Assembly (NCBI GenBank): GCA_038496445.1
Contig: JALMLS010000590.1
Location: 62,001 to 126,000, forward strand
Direction: 5' to 3'
Length of the DNA: 64,000 nucleotides
From: Trichosphaerium sp. ATCC 40318
Taxonomy: Eukaryota > Protista > Tubulinea
Position 1 is the first letter of the stretch; the number at the start of each line of letters is the position of its first letter. Below the pieces are notes generated by a model. The model saw only the letters and a list, made by a program, of their open reading frames with translations. It ran no database searches and was not told where the DNA came from. The position numbers and the translations under genes were made by a program. This document shows, piece after piece, positions 1,450 through 36,284 of the stretch.

Positions 1450-2885
1450 TCAGTATGGCCAAACTTCCAAGTCATTTGACTCTCTCTAGATATCAGTAAT
1501 GTAAGTAAGCGAGCCTAAGGATAGATTGCTTTTGTATTATACGCACCTGCGAAGTCGGCCTGTACGGATCGTGACAACCAATTCTAAATGCTGCACATGT
1601 TGTATGATCCATCTTGCCTTGGTTCAGATGAGTTAGTCTAGAGATAGACAGTTACGCAGTTCTTACCTGGATACTTGGCATAATCACTTGCAAGAGGGAG
1701 ATTTGGGTTCTGTTCCATAAACTCTCTGCTCGAACTAGTTGTGAGTCGGCAATGATCCATCAGTTTCTTGGATATCTGTCTTGGCGATATAAATGTTTCA
1801 TCCGCCCCTATCAGCGCCTGCAGCAACTTGCATTCGTAAAGCTAAAAACAATAAAACGTCAAAAAAAAAACAGAAAAAAAACATGGCAAAAAAAAGTGTT
1901 CCGAACCATTTTCGCGTGCGACACCATGTCTCTGTCAAGTGAGTCCCAAGCAACACCAGCAGTAATTCCTTTAATATTGGCTTCTGCTGGAGATTTGCCT
2001 AGAGTTTGTGGATCGAGATTATCGTGCACGCCATCGGACACCACAAAAACAATGTCCTTTTCTGCCACAGGCGCACATATAAGCGCTAGGTTCCGAAGAT
2101 CCGGTTCTCCATCGTTAATATACGGCCCTATAGGCTCAGTTACGCTTTCCGATTTCAGAAAAAAAAAAAAGACCAACTAGCGCACCTATCCTGCCGCCTG
2201 GATCTCTGGCGTCTGTAACATCTATACGGTTTCCTGCTGTGATATCGACTACTTCTTTTTCCTTGTCCTTAAAGACAAAAGCCTTACAATCTCCAATCGT
2301 ACAGCAAACGAACGCCCAACTGGGGTCAGTCGGATAGTGCTTGTTATCAATCTGTACAACCACACCACCAAGTAGCGTTGTTGTACCTGCCATCCATGGA
2401 TCGTTTTTATCAAAGACTATGGCATGGTTCGCGTGATGTAGCGCGGAAATGAGTACATCACCGATCTCCTTTATCGTTTTAACTTCTCCCATTTTACCAC
2501 TCAGATATACAACAAATGCGTTTTTTGCTCTGTTGGCCGCCTCCTTAGGCCGTTCGCCCCAGTTACAGCCATCCGTTACGCAAAACAAAATACCGTTTTT
2601 ATGCGTGTGTATCCTGTAACTATCGCACATAGGATCGCCCTCTCTGCTGGCATTGTCTGGGTAGTGTGGATACGTTGATATCGTTGACCCGTACGCTTGT
2701 TTAAAACTTTTATCAGGCACTTCGCCTTCATACGGCCCACTAATTACAACGGGATTACTCATACATAGTCTTTTAATTTTCCAATTCGGCAAATCTTGTA
2801 GAAGATCATTATCTTCCTTGTATTGTTGAAAAACGCTCTTCCCTTTAGTACTACTTTGTTTTGCCATCTTTCTACCACAAGCCAT
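1450..2885 (-). CDS. PP2C-like (PPM-fold) domain protein, CG9801/TipA-like family; multi-exon
   Basis: Motifs GDPMCD, VTDGCNWG, GTTTLLGG, IGDCKAF, DPGGRIG, VSDGVHDNLDP and PGKMDHTTC across spliced exons; the last exon reads RESNDLEVWPY*. Confidence 0.85.
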
Positions 2886-9644: not shown

Positions 9645-12600
9645 ATGGAACCAGACGTAGTACAGAGTCGATCAGCGAGGCGTAAGGTCCGAATAAAATA
9701 AATTGTTAGTTACAAGCAATCCATTAATTATCCCTTTGTATGCTAGTTTATCTAATATTCTATCGTAGAGCGTTAAGAATAGGTCTCGAAAGAGAAAGGC
9801 AACAGAAAATACTGACGCTCCTTCTGCTACACGCAGAAAAACTTCTCACAAGCGCTCCACAAAGGTAACATTCTTTTTTAAGTGACTGGAGGATAATAAA
9901 GTTACAGAAATTGTCAAAACGCTCAACAAAGGAGGACGACGAATCGACAAGCGAAGACGAGGAGAAATGGTAAAAAAGCTCAACGAACAATAAAACTACA
10001 AACACGTTTGTCAAAAAAAAGCACTACTTTGCTTACAAGGCTTTTTTTAGCTATCGTAGGAGTCTCAGAGAGCGAGTTATACTCGCTCACCAAGAACGCA
10101 AGGCGATGGAAGAGTTCTTTCACAACCTAGAACAAGTGAGTGCTCCTGAGCCTTGTAGCACGTAGAGAGAAACCTTTTCGAACTTCTCGTGACACGTTTT
10201 ACATAAAGCACAACTAACAAATTCTGTAGAAGCGCGTAAACCATCACTTTTTCAATGGCAAGCGTCTCACGCCAGAAGACATTGCACGTAAATGTAAGCA
10301 AAGGGCTATTTTTATCAATCACAATTTTCCAAATTCTGGTTTTTCCGTCTGATTTTCTGACGCTCCTCTTTGTTGCTTTTCTCGTAGTCAAACTCTTGGT
10401 CACTTCCGTTAATACTGAAGTAGCGAAACACAAACGGTTTTTGAATGCCAACTTGTGGAATCCCCCTGCAGAGTTTCAACACGACTCAGAGTTGCATGGG
10501 TTACCTGAACAAGATGACAACAAAGATGCACCTTCAGAAGCTTTAAAGAAGCAAGCTGCAGTTGAAATACCAGTATGGAGAACTATTTCTCGTGACACGT
10601 GCACCGAATATGAAGAAGAATATACAGACCGTTTCAAAGCGCGATACAACGAGGGTTTAATTATCACATGTCCGAGGAGCGTCAGAAAATCGAAATCAAA
10701 AGCTCATGCGTCCCCCAAGAAAAGAGGAGCGAGCTCTTCTCAATCACCCTTATCGCATATGTCTGCTATGATGGAGCCTAATGTTATTGTCACTCGGCGA
10801 CGACGAAGGTTGTCTGGTATTGAGCTGGCACCTTTAGAGCTGGACCCACAGCGTTCAGCTTTTAAAACAAAAATGGCTATACAATTGAAAAATGTTTTCG
10901 TAAAGGAAGCTTGGTTAGACCAAGAGGTAGAACTCTTTCAATATCTCTACAGTATTTACGGCTCCGAATGGAGACGTATATCCGATATCATGCAATCAAA
11001 GGTACACGTGAAAACAATTTAACGTGCCATGGACAACCTTGTTTTTTTTCAGCATGTTGTTTGCTCACCTACCTCTTTAGTCCCCACAATTCTTAAGGAA
11101 TACATACGAAAAGACCGGTGGATGCTTTAAAAACATAAAAACATTATCTGTAAAGGACACAACATGCCATTTGTGCCTGAAACAATACAATGGGTTCCAA
11201 CCAACAATTTTTTGTGATTGTTGTGATAGGTACAAAGGCCTTGTTTACCTCGTACATTCTGACACTCCTTATTACAGAGCCTATCACTTGGCTTGTCTTA
11301 ATCAAGATAATCCCGAACGGCCGTGGTATTGCTGCGAAGAGTGTAAGAACGTAGTAGCAATGGCAAGTATACACTCAATGTTTGTAACACTCATTGTTTT
11401 TGTGTAACTCTTAATTTAGCGATGCCAACATTGTTTATCTCCTGAAGATGGAGATAATATGCTTTTATGTGATAAATGCGATAAGGGTATCAATCTCTAA
11501 CATTGGCATTGTTGTATTAAATATGGTTTAGGATTTCATCTTTATTGTTTAAACCCTCCTCTTGAGAAGATTCCTTCAGAAGACTGGTTTTGTCCAACCT
11601 GTTCTGGAGCCTCACCTTCCACTTCACATTGTTCTAGGCCTGATACCATGGATGTAGATGGATATAGTGTCACTAGAGCCGCTTTATATGCCTCTGATGG
11701 AGCTTTGAAACGATCAAACACAATCACATTCACCGTCTCCAAGCCACTTTTTGTACGACTTTTTTTGAACCGGTCCTATTGACACGTACTAGTGTAATGC
11801 AAAGAAGAATAGTTTCATTGGCAAGGGTATTTCTATGCGACAGTGTGGGCACCCCCACATGAAGGACATGCTGCCTAGGAGCGTGTTTAACGACGTACGA
11901 TTTGATTTGCTTCAAAAACAGTTCTGGTTTTTTTTCAAACTTCTAAACCACTCGCAGGCAACCTTACCATTCTCTTGCGATAAGAACCTAGTAAATGAAC
12001 TGGCTTCTAGTGCTTCATTAAGCGTCCAAACCCTGATGAACCTTGGGAAGAAGTGTGTACCTTGTGCTTTTAGTAATGGCCTTCTTTTTGGATGTAACGG
12101 CGTCTTATACCCTCCGACAATGTCTTTGTTTGGTAAGCAACCAATGTCGATGAAATTAGGAGCGACCTTGGAGGATATCACAAAACACGTCCGACTCATT
12201 TCAGCTGCGGTTAACAAAGCAATCAATGCGACAATCTTGCGCTATGGTAAAAAGAAAAAAAGCAGAAGAAAACGAAGATCTTCGTCTTCATCAAAAGGTA
12301 GGCGCTCTTGTGCCTCAGCAAGTCAGTCATCAATGCGATCTGGTCAAGATGGATTCAGTGATGGAGAACAACGTGTATGGATCTTCCAAGCGAACCCAAA
12401 ATTGTACAGTATATCAGAGTCTATAAGTTCATTGAAGGACATGACATGGTTCATTAAACAACATATTCATAAGATTAAAAATGGTGATAAAGTACTCATA
12501 TGGGAGAGTGGAAAGAATGCTGGTGTTATTGGTATTGCATCTTTAACATCAGATCCACAAGAGATGGCAGAAGCAAGAGGCATGTCAAAGTTTGCTTTGG

Positions 12601-13406
12601 CTAAAATTTTCGATTCAGTGCAGTTGAGGTCTTGGCTTCACATTGACTATGTCCTTCATAAGAAACTTAAAAAGGCTAGCTGTAGAGCTCACCCTATTCT
12701 ACAAACTTTGACTATTCTTCGTGCTCCTATTGGAACGAACTTTAAGCTATCAAGACAACAGGCTGTGGCTTTTCAAAAATTGATAAAAGACAATGAAGGA
12801 AAAGCACCTAATTTATTAGGCAGTAGTAGCAACACTGAACCGACTTGTAATCAACCCAATCCGGGTTGTCCTGTACTGATACAATGCGCCTATGCTACTG
12901 CCGAGATGGCTGAGCGAAGTGGCGTCCATATGGATGGCCCCATGGCACCACATGAGGTACGTATGCGCCAAAGCTTTGCTCTTTTGAAGAGCGCTCTTAT
13001 CGATACTGGAAAAGACTCCAAGTCCTTCCCTTTTGTGCACTATTTAACCGAGTTTATTTTTTTTCTCATGTTATACTTAGCTTATCACTGCGAGGTTCCT
13101 TTTGTGCTTACAAGAGATACGATACCAACTCTGGCATCACCTGGATTCAGTTATTAGTAATTTTACGTCTAGCTATCACAACAGTATCCTTCTTTTTTTT
13201 TTTTTTTTTTATTTCGCTCTTTTGAGTAGTGTTTTTGCACTTAACTCGTGTAAGCGATTACTACAGTTTCGAGCCTTGCGGAGAATATGGAACAATTGTC
13301 CGCACAACTAGCGTTATTGAAAAGAGAACGGCGTCTTTTCACGCAAGCTTCTCGTGACGTAATTACGGAGCTGTTTACAAAATATGGGTGTGATTGTTTT
13401 TGTTGA
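9645..13406 (+). CDS. Chromatin reader: SANT/Myb + two PHD fingers + EVE (PUA-like) domain; multi-exon
   Basis: Myb: WLDQEVELFQYLYSIYGSEWRRISDIM. PHD1: CHLC..IFCDCCD..AYHLACL..WYCCEEC. PHD2: CQHC..MLLCDKCDKGFHLYCLNPPL..IPSEDWFCPTC. EVE: WIFQANPKLY..MTW..IKNGDKVLIWESGKNAGVIG..GTNFKLS. Confidence 0.85.
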
Positions 13407-33090: not shown

Positions 33091-36000
33091 ATGCGTGATA
33101 CTCTTTTTTTCGTCTCACTTTTCTTGATGGCTCTTGTTGGGGCTGTTTTCGGTGCTTCAAGACCCACAGAGTCTGTACCGAGCTGCGATGCTGCTTCTCC
33201 GAACTGGGGATGTCCTCGTGGTGATTACAGTGTATTCGAAAATGGCGAGCTCGACAGGCTTACCTGCAATAAAAGACCAGCACCTCTCATGGCTTGGGCT
33301 TTAAAGGTTGTTCGAAGCAATGACTACAGCACTTGGGCTGGTAGAGAAGACAACAAGGAGACCGAATACGTTCCAGATATGGTCATGGACATTAACATTA
33401 AAGTTCATAACTACGCCTTAAAATACCGTGGTATCCTTATCTATGCTCAAGACGTTGAAGGAAACAGAGTTGGTCAATGGCTTCTACCAGAAGAAGATAA
33501 CCGTACGTTGTTTAAAAAAATGAGTTTAAAAGTTGTGTTCGCTTTTGATGTGTCAGTTCACGCGTTGACTTTTTGATAGCATTCTTCAAGTTACCTTGGC
33601 CTAATTCACACTCATGTCGCCAAAGTATTACCCACAACACTGCTGAACTCAAACCTCTTAAGTCAACATGGAAGTGGAAGGCTCCACCAAAGGGAACTGG
33701 ACCGGTAACTTTCCACTGTTTGATTAAGCAGGGTGACGCTAATACTGGAGCATTTTTCTGGCCAAACAACAGCGGAACCGGTCCACTCAAACTCACCGAA
33801 TCAAGAAGAACAAAACCAACTCAAACATGGTTTCTATCAAAGGTAAATGTGTTTCTTTTTTTTTTGGTTCAAACCCGCTGAACTAACATTTCTTTCTAGC
33901 AAGGTCAATCTTGTACTGATAGATGTACTGAAGTCAGGCCTAATCTGAAGTGTGATCGTGTCCATATGGAGCGTATTAATAGCCCAGCCAAAATCGAAGA
34001 GCTCATAATTCCACAAAGCATCCCTTGCAAACTTCCGTATGTAAGCATCTGTTCTAACAAAGGAGCTACAATGGGTACAGATGGGCTTTGTTACTATGAC
34101 GATACCAGATGTGCATCACAAGGACGTAACAGAGGAAGAGTTACTTGCGAATCTAGAATCGGTGATGCCAGATTCGGGTACGCACCAACAAAGTCAACGT
34201 TTACTTTTTTTCTTGGATACTTATCTTTGTTTTAAGGCTGCCTATGTGTAAATGTGTCACCTCGACTCTTCCACCTGCCAATCCAGGTAGAACCGTTATT
34301 GCAGCTAGAGATGCATCTTCATTTGCCTCAAAATCTACCTCATCTTTCCTATTGATGGCTCTCGCTATTCTTGGCTTAACAATGCGTTCATCAACAAAGA
34401 TGACTGCTTCCCTTGTATTGGCTCTCTTCCTTATCGTTTTGATTTCCTTCCCAACTGCTCGAGCTCATAATTGGCAATTCAGCTCAGGAAGAAGTAAAGA
34501 TATTGCCAGCACTCAAACCCCATGCCCATCAAGAAAACAAGCTGCTCCTCACGTGCAAGTCGGGCCTGGTCAACTTTTCGAAATTGAATGGTCAGTTGGT
34601 CACTCTCAACCTTCGTACTATGTCATCATCAAAGCTGAAGATGAACCAAGACTTAGAAAGGTAACATTCGACCTTATGGACGCGTACATGAACGAAGCAC
34701 CAAACAGCGCTTGCAAGAATCTACCTGTATACCACAGACAATTCAGAACTCGTGATGCTGGCTTTGATCCCTTCCTAGAATTCTATAGCGGTGAGATCCC
34801 TGAAACTTCCCCAAATTTTATCCCAAGGCCAGAAGCTTTCGGTGTTTGGAGAGATGACGCTACATTGTTTGGATATAGGGATGAACTTGAAGTAAGAAAT
34901 TATTGCGAATACACGAACAACAAGCTTGACTTTGTTCTTGGCATCTTCAAGTTTGAACATTTTGCACAAAGACCTGCCGATGCTGATATGGTCAGACTTT
35001 CTATGCCAAATAGTGCTTCCTTCGGTAACTATGTTATTCAATGGCTATGGAGAGGTTACAGAGATTGTATTGATCTTAACTATGTCAACAGGCAAGTTCC
35101 AGACATATACGGTGTTCCACACCTTGCCTCCAGTTTCAAGTAAGTCACCTGTTTCAGATGTTTCTTTTTTTTTTTTGATTGTACGAATTCTGACTTATGT
35201 GGTAGTCGTATTGATCACTGCTACTTCCCTGACCCACGTGTTGTACATGGTACGTAGTACACATTGGGTTGAATTTGGGAATAATTAGTAATAAAGAATT
35301 TTGCGTCCTATTACAGAAACAACCGCATTTTAACACGCGATAAAAAGTATTTTGATTTTTTTGTGGTTTTTTTTTTCCCTAACAATGTTCGCCCTTTGTT
35401 CTAATTGTTAATTTTTAGAATGTTTCAGAATCTACAACAACGCTGATGTTTGTCAACTGGCTTGTGAGCGAAGACGTGACTGTTCAGGATACATGGTATT
35501 GCCTAGTAAACTTCGAGGAAACGAATGGAACGCCCAAGCCAATCTCATCCCTCAATTATGCAAAGACGCTGCAGTAAATCTTGGAGAGTCACCTTTTAAT
35601 GTAGACGTGTGCTACACTGTGCAAGCGCGATTGGGAACTGAGACATTCGGAGCAGAAGAAGTAGTACACGCAGGTGACCCTGCATACCAATCGACATGTT
35701 GGCTAAAGGGAGCTGGGCGTCTATTCCCTGGATTTATTATTCCTCCACAACATCAAGATATCCCATGGAAACACGGAGATCAATGCATATCTTGCGACGC
35801 TGTAAACCTTAACAAAAACATTACACGTCAACCTAAATGGCCAATGACGAATGACTGTAGAAACTGCGACTTGGAACCTAAAACCGATACACCTGCCTTC
35901 GATCCCCCTGAGCTCATCTTAAAGGAGGCTGGTAAGCTATGTGATGGTCATAATATTTACCGAGGTCTCGGGGGAGGAAAGAAACACCACAGCTGTCCTG

Positions 36001-36284
36001 GAGAAACATGGAGGAATTGCAAAAAAGAAGTACTCATCAGAGGACGTCCTGCTCCTTGGAACGCTCTTCATTTTGGCAACGATTGTGCAGCTGCCGCTGC
36101 AAAAGATCTAGAGTGTTCTGATACAATCTACACTCTACAACTCGGTTTGAAATACAGTGGTGGATTTGCATACAGCTGCTTCTGTATGAGGAAGCTTGCT
36201 TGCTGTAACGGATGCAGACCAATGGCATTGGCAACAAATCCACAACGTTGGAATATCTACACTCTCCATCGAGGCTCATCATAG
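33091..36284 (+). CDS. Secreted/membrane polyprotein: signal peptide, Reeler, Cys-rich module, TM + internal signal peptide, LPMO-like His-brace domain, Cys-rich (PAN/apple-like) modules
   Basis: Signal MRDTLFFVSLFLMALVGAVFG. Reeler YRGILIYAQD..VGQW..SITH..WKWKAPPKGTGPVTFHCLI. In-frame splice gg|gtacgc..tttaag|g. Then LVLALFLIVLISFPTARA|HNW, IEWSVGH and YVIQWLWRGYRDCIDL. Confidence 0.8.

Follow-up and report, generated by a model that had tools for sequence, protein, structure and literature searches.

In histidine-brace proteins such as the lytic polysaccharide monooxygenases (LPMOs), the catalytic domain is generally expected to follow an N-terminal signal peptide without a gap, a rule on which the search for new LPMOs in genomes relies. 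Signal peptidase can also act inside a precursor: The glycoprotein precursors of flaviviruses, pestiviruses, and bunyaviruses contain a stop-transfer helix and, after a brief cytosolic loop, an internal signal sequence that the host enzyme cuts at its lumenal end. Among the closest described proteins, X325 proteins have a histidine brace but no detected polysaccharide-degrading activity, and Bim1 of Cryptococcus acts in copper uptake (PMC7924993). Reeler domains are known from the CYBDOM ferric reductases (SDR2/FRRS1 and Drosophila CG8399), which combine Reeler, DOMON, and cytochrome b561 and present an extracellular Reeler domain on a membrane protein beside electron-transfer modules (PMC10691727). 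Our literature searches on Reeler domains and LPMOs, internal signal peptides and histidine braces, LPMO-like families of amoebae or protists, and signal-peptidase polyproteins found no description of a layout such as the one presented here, and a search on Reeler domains and copper likewise returned nothing about it.

The gene in question lies in a stretch of 64,000 nucleotides from Trichosphaerium sp. ATCC 40318 that is called the window below. An earlier note on this DNA had proposed a polyprotein with an internal signal peptide in front of a histidine-brace domain, and all elements that it named (the splice junction, the hydrophobic stretch, the RSSTK loop, the internal signal peptide, the His behind it, the WSVGH His, and the RGYRDC Tyr) were found at the positions it had given. 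We favor, at a probability of roughly 65%, the reading that the gene encodes a secretory precursor that is split in the ER into a membrane-held Reeler/Cys-rich protein and a soluble histidine-brace protein with His as its first residue. The gene and its upstream half are composed as follows:

33091-36284, forward strand: whole gene with 6 exons and GT..AG introns, in-frame coding sequence of 2766 nt for 921 aa, stop codon at 36282-36284
33091-33502, 33580-33842, 33900-34177, 34237-35139, 35206-35249, and 35419-36284, forward strand: the 6 exons
33091-33153, forward strand: N-terminal signal peptide (around aa 1-21, MRDTLFFVSLFLMALVGAVFG; hydropathy peak at aa 2-24), its extent judged visually on the basis of the -3/-1 rule
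33268-33812, forward strand: Reeler-like domain (around aa 60-215), split by intron 1 (33503-33579), called by homology to relatives
33900-34255, forward strand: Cys-rich module (aa 226-324), split by intron 3, with 10 conserved Cys and its C-x-C end inside exon 4

All 5 introns have GT..AG boundaries and all exons join in frame to a single coding sequence; intron 3 (34178-34236) is the junction gg/gtacgc..tttaag/g. This splice model is backed by colinear alignment with intronless homologues that spans every junction, with E-values of 1.4e-65 for aa 16-324 against homologue P0003 and of 1.3e-43 for residues 1-239 of the His domain, and the colinear N-terminal part is common to 78 fetched relatives. 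From its N-terminus onward, the precursor contains a signal peptide, the Reeler domain, the 10-Cys module, a hydrophobic segment, RSSTK, a signal-peptide-like segment ending in ARA, His395, a domain of around 220 aa, and a Cys-rich tail with a putative PAN/apple-like end. A search for paralogues within the 64-kb window found none.

The Reeler call of the earlier note stands by homology but not by direct match. The region aligns to relatives with phmmer E-values down to 1.7e-46, and PF02014, with its gathering cut-off of 21 bits, gives scores of 21-41 bits for relatives whose alignments with the region have E-values of 1e-28 to 1e-46, while the window's own intron-split pieces have no match to this or any other Pfam family in a search with 5 exon-wise pieces of the gene. 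In an alignment of the upstream half that comprised the window sequence and 62 relatives (63 sequences), the conserved Reeler residues are G114, G128, W130, C150, H156, K162, K187, G189, G194, and F196. The Cys-rich module is matched by no Pfam family and by phmmer in 33 relatives; C230, C234, C322, and C324 are 100% conserved in the same 63 sequences, and the 6 further Cys are conserved at 89-97%.

The domain behind the internal signal peptide, which we call the HNW domain after its first residues, is followed by a tail:

34466-35119, forward strand: LPMO-like HNW domain (aa 395-612), with 362 relatives and an AlphaFold2 fold match
34466-34468, forward strand: codon of His1 (His395)
34601-34603, forward strand: second His (of WSVGH; domain residue H46)
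35057-35059, forward strand: Tyr of RGYRDC (domain residue Y198)
35419-36281, forward strand: Cys-rich C-terminal tail (aa 634-920), of which the last ~125 residues (~35899-36281) are predicted to be PAN/apple/WSC-like

Among 1.8 billion representatives searched, the HNW domain has 362 relatives at E<=1e-3, and the closest named ones come from two tubulinid amoebae, Flabellula baltica and Rhizamoeba saxonica. Two narrower searches gave less: A shared-word search with P0001 as query retrieved 4 matches only, and a homologue search with a 251-aa piece in a restricted length band retrieved none because the relatives lie outside this band. No relatives turned up among viral contigs searched with the WxGYxD pattern. 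Across 78 aligned sequences, H1, R9, and H46 are invariant, N2, W3, W195, Y198, D200, and D203 are conserved at 90% or more, and H29, H93, and D144 are also invariant or nearly so. The motif QWxW..Y/F..C.D, which the earlier note had presented as typical of LPMOs, is taken here as no more than a conserved motif of the HNW family. With a His directly behind a predicted signal-peptidase site and a conserved second His (H46), the domain has two sequence properties of histidine-brace proteins. By sequence it belongs to no described LPMO family: Pfam searches with 78 members gave only scattered chance-level matches (the best to AA9 with E 0.0056 in 1 of the 78), and neither phmmer nor a profile search matched the domain to PDB sequences.

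An AlphaFold2 model of the domain (pLDDT 93.9, pTM 0.90) has LaX325 (6ibh; rmsd 3.5, 127 of 150 residues aligned) and TdAA15 (5msz; rmsd 2.7, 118 residues aligned) as its joint best VIA-align matches, both with a Z-score of 7.8, followed by AA11, AA9, AA10, AA13, and AA16; the Z-scores of LPMO families run from 7.8 to 5, up to a value that the alignment tool itself calls middling. LPMO-type chains dominate both match lists and make up around 35 of the top 50 re-aligned matches, the alignments begin at the mature His1 of the matched LPMO chains, and H46 lies just after the strand formed by residues 38-43 of the model. Foldseek against the PDB found nothing at E<=1e-3 and only weak rows for AA10, AA13, and fusolin. 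Together with the invariance of H1 and H46, the top structural matches support the LPMO-like fold that had been suggested, and the model points to a beta-sandwich of LPMO/X325 type with the Ig-like core of LPMOs, recognizable at middling Z-scores.

The HNW domain resembles X325, as seen in LaX325, in being a small beta-sandwich and in having a second His not far from His1 along the sequence. In contrast to X325, to which it has no detectable sequence similarity, it is around 70 residues longer, carries the Tyr-containing motif WxGYxDCxD, and is located mid-protein behind a hairpin instead of following an N-terminal signal peptide. With AA15 (TdAA15A, 5msz), AA9, AA10, AA11, AA13, and AA16, the family has in common an N-terminal His that is invariant, a second His, and a conserved Tyr, but no Pfam LPMO model matches it and the domain does not stand at the start of the gene product. 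LPMO families also have binding modules appended at their C-terminus, and the tail of the window gene may contain such a module. This tail is common to 39 relatives and has no Pfam match; a VIA search with its AlphaFold2 model, which has a pLDDT of 74, placed almost exclusively PAN, apple, MANEC, and WSC domains at ranks 1-25 (Z 6.7 down to 3.4; model residues 158-287), and Foldseek matches to MANEC were weak (E 0.14). The modeled PAN/apple-like end of the tail may be comparable to the binding module on an LPMO.

Among the alternatives to our reading, the one that survives best accepts cleavage of the precursor but holds that the HNW domain is no copper histidine brace and instead a beta-sandwich for binding or adhesion, or a site for another metal, with His1 conserved for a different reason. 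This would fit the middling Z-scores, the beta-sandwich adhesins, pilins, and carbohydrate-binding modules (CBMs) that are also found among the fold matches, the lack of a sequence match to LPMO families, and the conservation of R9, H29, H93, and D144 as further residues. Yet LPMOs and X325 proteins are characterized by just this combination of an invariant His at +1, a second His, and, on a late strand, a Tyr that is nearly invariant, LPMO-type chains prevail among the re-aligned matches, and cupredoxin domains are located upstream in 3 relatives, which makes a domain without a copper brace improbable in our eyes.

Release of this domain as a protein of its own would depend on the segments that precede it:

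34340-34384, forward strand: first hydrophobic segment SSFLLMALAILGLTM (aa 353-367), a Kyte-Doolittle peak and predicted stop-transfer helix
34385-34399, forward strand: basic loop RSSTK (aa 368-372), predicted to be cytosolic
34400-34465, forward strand: internal signal-peptide-like segment MTASLVLALFLIVLISFPTARA (aa 373-394), with the predicted signal-peptidase cut between 34465 and 34466

Following up the suggestion to search other protists for this architecture, we examined 151 distinct copies of the domain, of which 99 non-identical ones lie mid-protein and share the layout while 52 are stand-alone proteins. Two strong hydrophobic segments precede the His in 79 of 94 mid-protein relatives, and the loop between them has a median length of 5 aa. 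Of these 79 relatives, 51 have a loop with positive net charge, 25 a loop without net charge, and 3 a negative one. We applied the -3/-1 rule of signal peptidase by counting residues in the 99 mid-protein copies. Position -1 is occupied by A (81), G (15), or S (3) and nothing else, position -3 is small or aliphatic in every copy (most commonly A, V, T, S, and C, with G in another count), and position +1 is always His, followed by N and then W. Positions -4 and -5 are enriched in P, S, T, and G, and the uncharged h and c regions together have a median length of 18 aa, as would be expected for a signal peptide. The gene has the layout of a polyprotein processed by signal peptidase (a stop-transfer helix, a loop, and an internal signal sequence that carries the -3/-1 motif), and its recurrence in 99 non-identical copies among the fetched relatives places it far beyond chance. 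These counts support the cleavable internal signal peptide postulated by the earlier note. The same note had also likened the first hydrophobic stretch to a GPI signal, and we did not adopt this at the level of the gene because no stop codon follows the stretch: The open reading frame runs on for 554 codons and the stretch is not C-terminal. One may speculate that it becomes near-terminal, but only after cleavage.

Two adjacent hydrophobic segments around a short basic loop also resemble a helical hairpin anchor, and the protein might remain uncleaved as one chain with two ectodomains, permanently held by this hairpin, in which the His has a role that does not involve a free amine. A permanent anchor would not need A, G, or S at -1 and a small or aliphatic residue at -3 in 99 of 99 copies, nor helix breakers at -4 and -5 or an invariant His at +1. 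Moreover, the same domain exists as a stand-alone protein with His directly behind an ordinary N-terminal signal peptide, and in 52 of 52 such relatives the site obeys the same pattern of A, G, or S at -1 and a small or aliphatic residue at -3. We consider an uncleaved anchor quite unlikely.

About equally unlikely appears the formation of two translation products without proteolysis, in which the His protein of this species would start from its own ATG (34382 or 34400, MRSSTKMTASLV...) and read-through from upstream would be nominal. Such a start could involve leaky scanning, an internal promoter, or an alternative transcript. In the window gene, two Met codons at 34382 and 34400 indeed precede the internal signal peptide, and MRSSTK-MTASLVLALFLIVLISFPTARA begins with a Met and has all of the n, h, and c regions of a signal peptide. 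Genes of this stand-alone kind also exist (in both of two examined, in-frame stop codons are found upstream of the ATG), and fused and stand-alone layouts are interleaved on the tree in a way that indicates frequent interconversion. What speaks against this explanation is that the upstream protein would have no terminating stop codon: Exon 4 runs without one from the end of the Cys module (C322 and C324) through the two hydrophobic segments into the His domain. Nor is an internal start codon conserved, as no more than 14 of 79 relatives have a Met close to the loop. Finally, relatives from Trinity transcriptomes (Flabellula and Rhizamoeba) and contigs with around 3 times the length of the protein show the same single ORF on one mRNA across the junction, in agreement with the single gene that had been postulated. 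Two independent genes are rejected for the family by the absent stop codon and the lack of a conserved Met near the loop.

Under the favored reading of a precursor split in the ER, the N-terminal signal peptide would direct the upstream half, with its Reeler domain and Cys-rich module, into the lumen, where the first hydrophobic segment would halt transfer and the short, mostly basic loop would remain cytosolic. The second hydrophobic segment would then resume translocation as an internal signal peptide, and signal peptidase would cleave after the A-x-A motif. One product would be the membrane-held Reeler/Cys-rich protein; the other would be a soluble protein of around 527 aa that starts with His395 and ends with a putative PAN/apple-like binding module. 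The new alpha-amine and the side chain of His1 would form a copper histidine brace with H46 and with Y198 nearby, and the protein may have an oxidative or copper-handling activity. That it attacks polysaccharides of prey or of the cyst wall, as the earlier note imagined, is a matter of speculation. The topology logic is that of the viral polyproteins, with two lumenal products from one ORF, but the window gene belongs to a cellular protist family, and beyond separating two proteins the cut would here generate an N-terminus for catalysis or metal binding.

A role of the Reeler product may be sought in what accompanies it elsewhere. In the relatives P0203, P0071, and P0006, the part upstream of the hairpin contains a cupredoxin domain that scores above the Pfam cut-off, and the upstream product may therefore act as a partner in redox or copper handling that is produced at a 1:1 ratio. 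The cupredoxin of P0006 was seen in part, on a contig with 67% GC. In some relatives, a sub-threshold DOMON adjoins the Reeler domain. With a cupredoxin or such a DOMON placed next to Reeler, some HNW relatives resemble the CYBDOM proteins, whereas the window gene has neither DOMON nor cytochrome b561. A tentative and rather doubtful extension of these observations would be an "operon inside a protein" in which the membrane-held Reeler/Cys-rich product, joined in some lineages by a cupredoxin or DOMON-like module, is the dedicated electron donor or copper loader of the released histidine-brace protein; splitting by signal peptidase would secure 1:1 synthesis and co-delivery, and the proteins would make up a new family, LPMO-like and spread over many lineages of protists, that is missed when searches require the catalytic domain at the N-terminus.

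Transcriptomes and metatranscriptomes of protists contain hundreds of diverged HNW proteins, and in 99 of the 151 distinct copies it is a second, internal signal peptide that would place the His as the rule for histidine-brace proteins demands. If this is confirmed, amoebae and other protists would have an LPMO-like family that has gone undescribed, and a cellular case of virus-style polyprotein processing by signal peptidase would be known that also makes a metal site. The Reeler domain, whose function is obscure, would then be tied to the chemistry of copper and redox reactions at the cell surface, in some proteins alongside a cupredoxin.

The gene at positions 33091-36284 of the forward strand is eukaryotic, with short GT..AG introns, and its six exons join in frame into a coding sequence of 2766 nt (921 codons):

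33091-33502, + strand: exon 1
33580-33842, + strand: exon 2
33900-34177, + strand: exon 3
34237-35139, + strand: exon 4
35206-35249, + strand: exon 5
35419-36284, + strand: exon 6

The junction gg/gtacgc...tttaag/g proposed in the earlier note is intron 3 of this model. Since alignments to intronless relatives cross every junction colinearly (aa 16-324 against P0003, E 1.4e-65; the His domain including exons 4-6 against the same relative, E 1.3e-43; the Cys-rich tail against another relative, P0009, E 2.4e-28), the gene model stands on more than a reading of splice sites. Exon 4 is free of stop codons and holds C322 and C324 (the last two cysteines of the upstream module, both fully conserved), both hydrophobic segments and the His domain, so that the fusion into a single gene, as claimed earlier, is a property of the DNA and not of an inferred splice. 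Elsewhere in the window, an ORF at 11835-13157 (+) contains an EVE domain (PF01878, 35.1 bits), and another at 2136-2885 (-) matches PP2C_2 slightly under the cut-off (22 versus 24 bits). The encoded protein is organized as follows (all + strand):

aa 1-21: signal peptide
about aa 60-215 (33268-33812): Reeler-like domain
aa 226-324 (33900-34255): module of 10 conserved cysteines
aa 353-367: first hydrophobic segment, SSFLLMALAILGLTM
aa 368-372: loop RSSTK
aa 373-394: internal signal-peptide-like segment, MTASLVLALFLIVLISFPTARA
His395 (codon at 34466): first residue (H1) of the His domain
aa 395-612: His domain, about 220 aa
aa 634-920: Cys-rich tail

Pfam searches with the Reeler pieces of the window gene, which introns split apart, gave no match, but relatives that align to the region with E-values down to 1e-46 clear the Reeler gathering threshold themselves (P0002, P0004, P0005, P0019, P0122, P0203, and others; 21-41 bits against a 21-bit cut-off). 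The Reeler domain named in the earlier note is thus supported by homology though not by direct match. Across 63 aligned sequences (the window protein and 62 relatives), M67, Y93, and H156 of this domain are 89-94% conserved, alongside C150 and K187. The 10-cysteine module belongs to no Pfam family; in relatives P0030 and P0102, the corresponding region matches the C-terminal end of Glyco_transf_18 (PF15024) weakly and below threshold.

A phmmer search of 1.84 billion representatives with the His domain as query returned 362 proteins at E<=1e-3 (179 at E<=1e-10), and almost every alignment begins with the His, query residue 1. Most of these relatives are 850-1600 aa long with the domain beginning at residue 300-450, and a colinear Reeler and Cys-rich N-terminus is common to 78 fetched proteins. 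Relatives with a named source come from Trinity transcriptomes of two tubulinid amoebae, Flabellula baltica and Rhizamoeba saxonica, from an MMETSP transcriptome, and from the acantharian Phyllostaurus. The others come from environmental contigs about 3 times the protein length, and are therefore mRNA-like single ORFs. The Phyllostaurus protein is of a stand-alone type, seen in 52 relatives, in which Met and a short signal peptide are followed directly by HNW. In the two cases checked on contigs, P0031 (contigs L003 and L004) and P0008 (L005 and L006), in-frame stops upstream of the ATG mark these as real separate genes; L003 also has a poly-A run at its end, which fits an mRNA contig. A quickly computed maximum-likelihood tree of 151 domains (unrooted and with some fragments included) requires at least 21 changes between the fused and stand-alone layouts, and well-supported branches force 15 of these. 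We cautiously conclude that the two layouts readily interconvert, which is expected if the internal segment acts as a normal signal peptide.

Searches with the His domain, both with the lone sequence and with a profile of 78 members, matched neither a Pfam family nor a PDB sequence. Three residues, H1, R9, and H46, never vary among the 78 aligned sequences, and conservation reaches 90% or more at N2, W3, H29, Q31, Q36, Y74, H93, D144, Y149, W195, G197, Y198, D200, and D203. From this alignment, AlphaFold2 predicts a confident beta-sandwich (pLDDT 93.9, pTM 0.90). Foldseek gave no match at E<=1e-3 and just weak AA10, AA13, and fusolin rows. The exhaustive VIA-align search ranked the LaX325 copper-binding protein 6ibh (Z 7.8, rmsd 3.5, 127/150 residues aligned) and the Thermobia AA15 LPMO 5msz (Z 7.8, rmsd 2.7, 118 residues) first, followed by AA11, AA9, AA10, AA13, and AA16 chains. 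When Foldseek's top 1000 were re-aligned, LPMOs made up about 35 of the best 50, with alignments starting at their mature N-terminal His. This predicted fold favors the LPMO-type reading of the earlier note, and the domain is best described as LPMO/X325-like in fold and as having the invariant residues that a putative histidine brace would require (defining features in PMC10952591 and PMC7924993), not as a member of a described family. We keep the claim at this level because the Z-scores are in the tool's middling range and pilins and adhesins are also among the matches; less probably, the domain may have a role other than in copper chemistry. For X325 proteins, which have a histidine brace, polysaccharide-degrading activity was not detected, and the role of Bim1 is copper uptake (PMC10952591, PMC7924993).

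Among 99 non-identical mid-protein copies, the signal peptide expected directly before the His is supported by a strict pattern around the predicted cut. A occupies position -1 in 81 copies, G in 15, and S in 3; at -3, 94/99 copies carry A, V, T, S, or C, the five most frequent residues there (a fuller count on 94 copies adds only G); and P, S, T, and G are enriched at -4 and -5. Past the cut come His at +1 in 99/99, N at +2 in 98/99, and W at +3 in 97/99. Two strong hydrophobic segments lie within 80 residues upstream of the His in 79 of 94 copies in an earlier count, separated by a loop of median 5 aa with positive (51), zero (25), or negative (3) net charge. Before the cut site, the uncharged stretch is 18 aa long at the median (quartiles 15-21), which equals a cleavable signal peptide in length. 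As judged from sequence, the junction has the topology of a signal-peptidase-processed polyprotein, with a stop-transfer helix, a positive-inside loop, and an internal signal sequence ending in a -3/-1 site. For the window gene, separate translation of the His part from Met codons 34382 and 34400 is possible, but such a start is not conserved across the family: Met occurs near the loop in only 14/79 copies, and the downstream domain is thus not generally translatable on its own. A permanent uncleaved hairpin would leave both the strict -1/-3/+1 pattern and the stand-alone genes unexplained. A processed polyprotein would combine two established types of protein, those with a histidine brace and polyproteins split by signal peptidase, with cleavage and copper role predicted; a full-text literature search found no description of a Reeler-LPMO fusion or of an internal signal peptide exposing a histidine brace.

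The window protein has no hydrophobic tail at its C-terminus, so that the part downstream of the predicted cut would be soluble. Its last ~125 residues (35899-36281, aa ~793-920; model moderately confident at pLDDT 74) match almost exclusively PAN/apple/MANEC/WSC folds (ranks 1-25, Z up to 6.7), including apicomplexan lectin-type apple domains and WSC-bearing fungal copper oxidases. This PAN/apple/WSC-like module has no Pfam match, and no fold match was assigned to the tail's first ~100 residues (35419-35720) or its middle. Going by these models, the released product would look like an LPMO-like domain to which a binding module has been added. Upstream of the hairpin and HNW domain, three relatives carry a blue-copper (cupredoxin) domain above the Pfam cut-off, drawn from two families (PF02298 and PF00127):

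P0203, aa 351-415: Cu_bind_like, with Reeler, 23.8 versus 20.8 bits
P0071, aa 366-441: Copper-bind, 32.6 versus 21.2 bits
P0006/P0174, aa 13-39: Copper-bind, 23.9 versus 21.2 bits (P0006)

These domain matches suggest that electron-transfer modules can form part of the upstream product. DOMON matches below the 32.7-bit cut-off occur in the upstream parts of P0083 (aa 512-558, 28.1 bits), P0102 (aa 339-436, 20.9 bits), and P0087 (aa 53-104, 15.1 bits); P0030 has TSP1 and EGF-like modules in place of DOMON. In CYBDOM ferric reductases, Reeler stands beside DOMON and cytochrome b561, its role there being unknown (PMC10691727). The cupredoxin, DOMON, and tail context makes it plausible that the two halves of the protein are partners in redox chemistry or copper handling.
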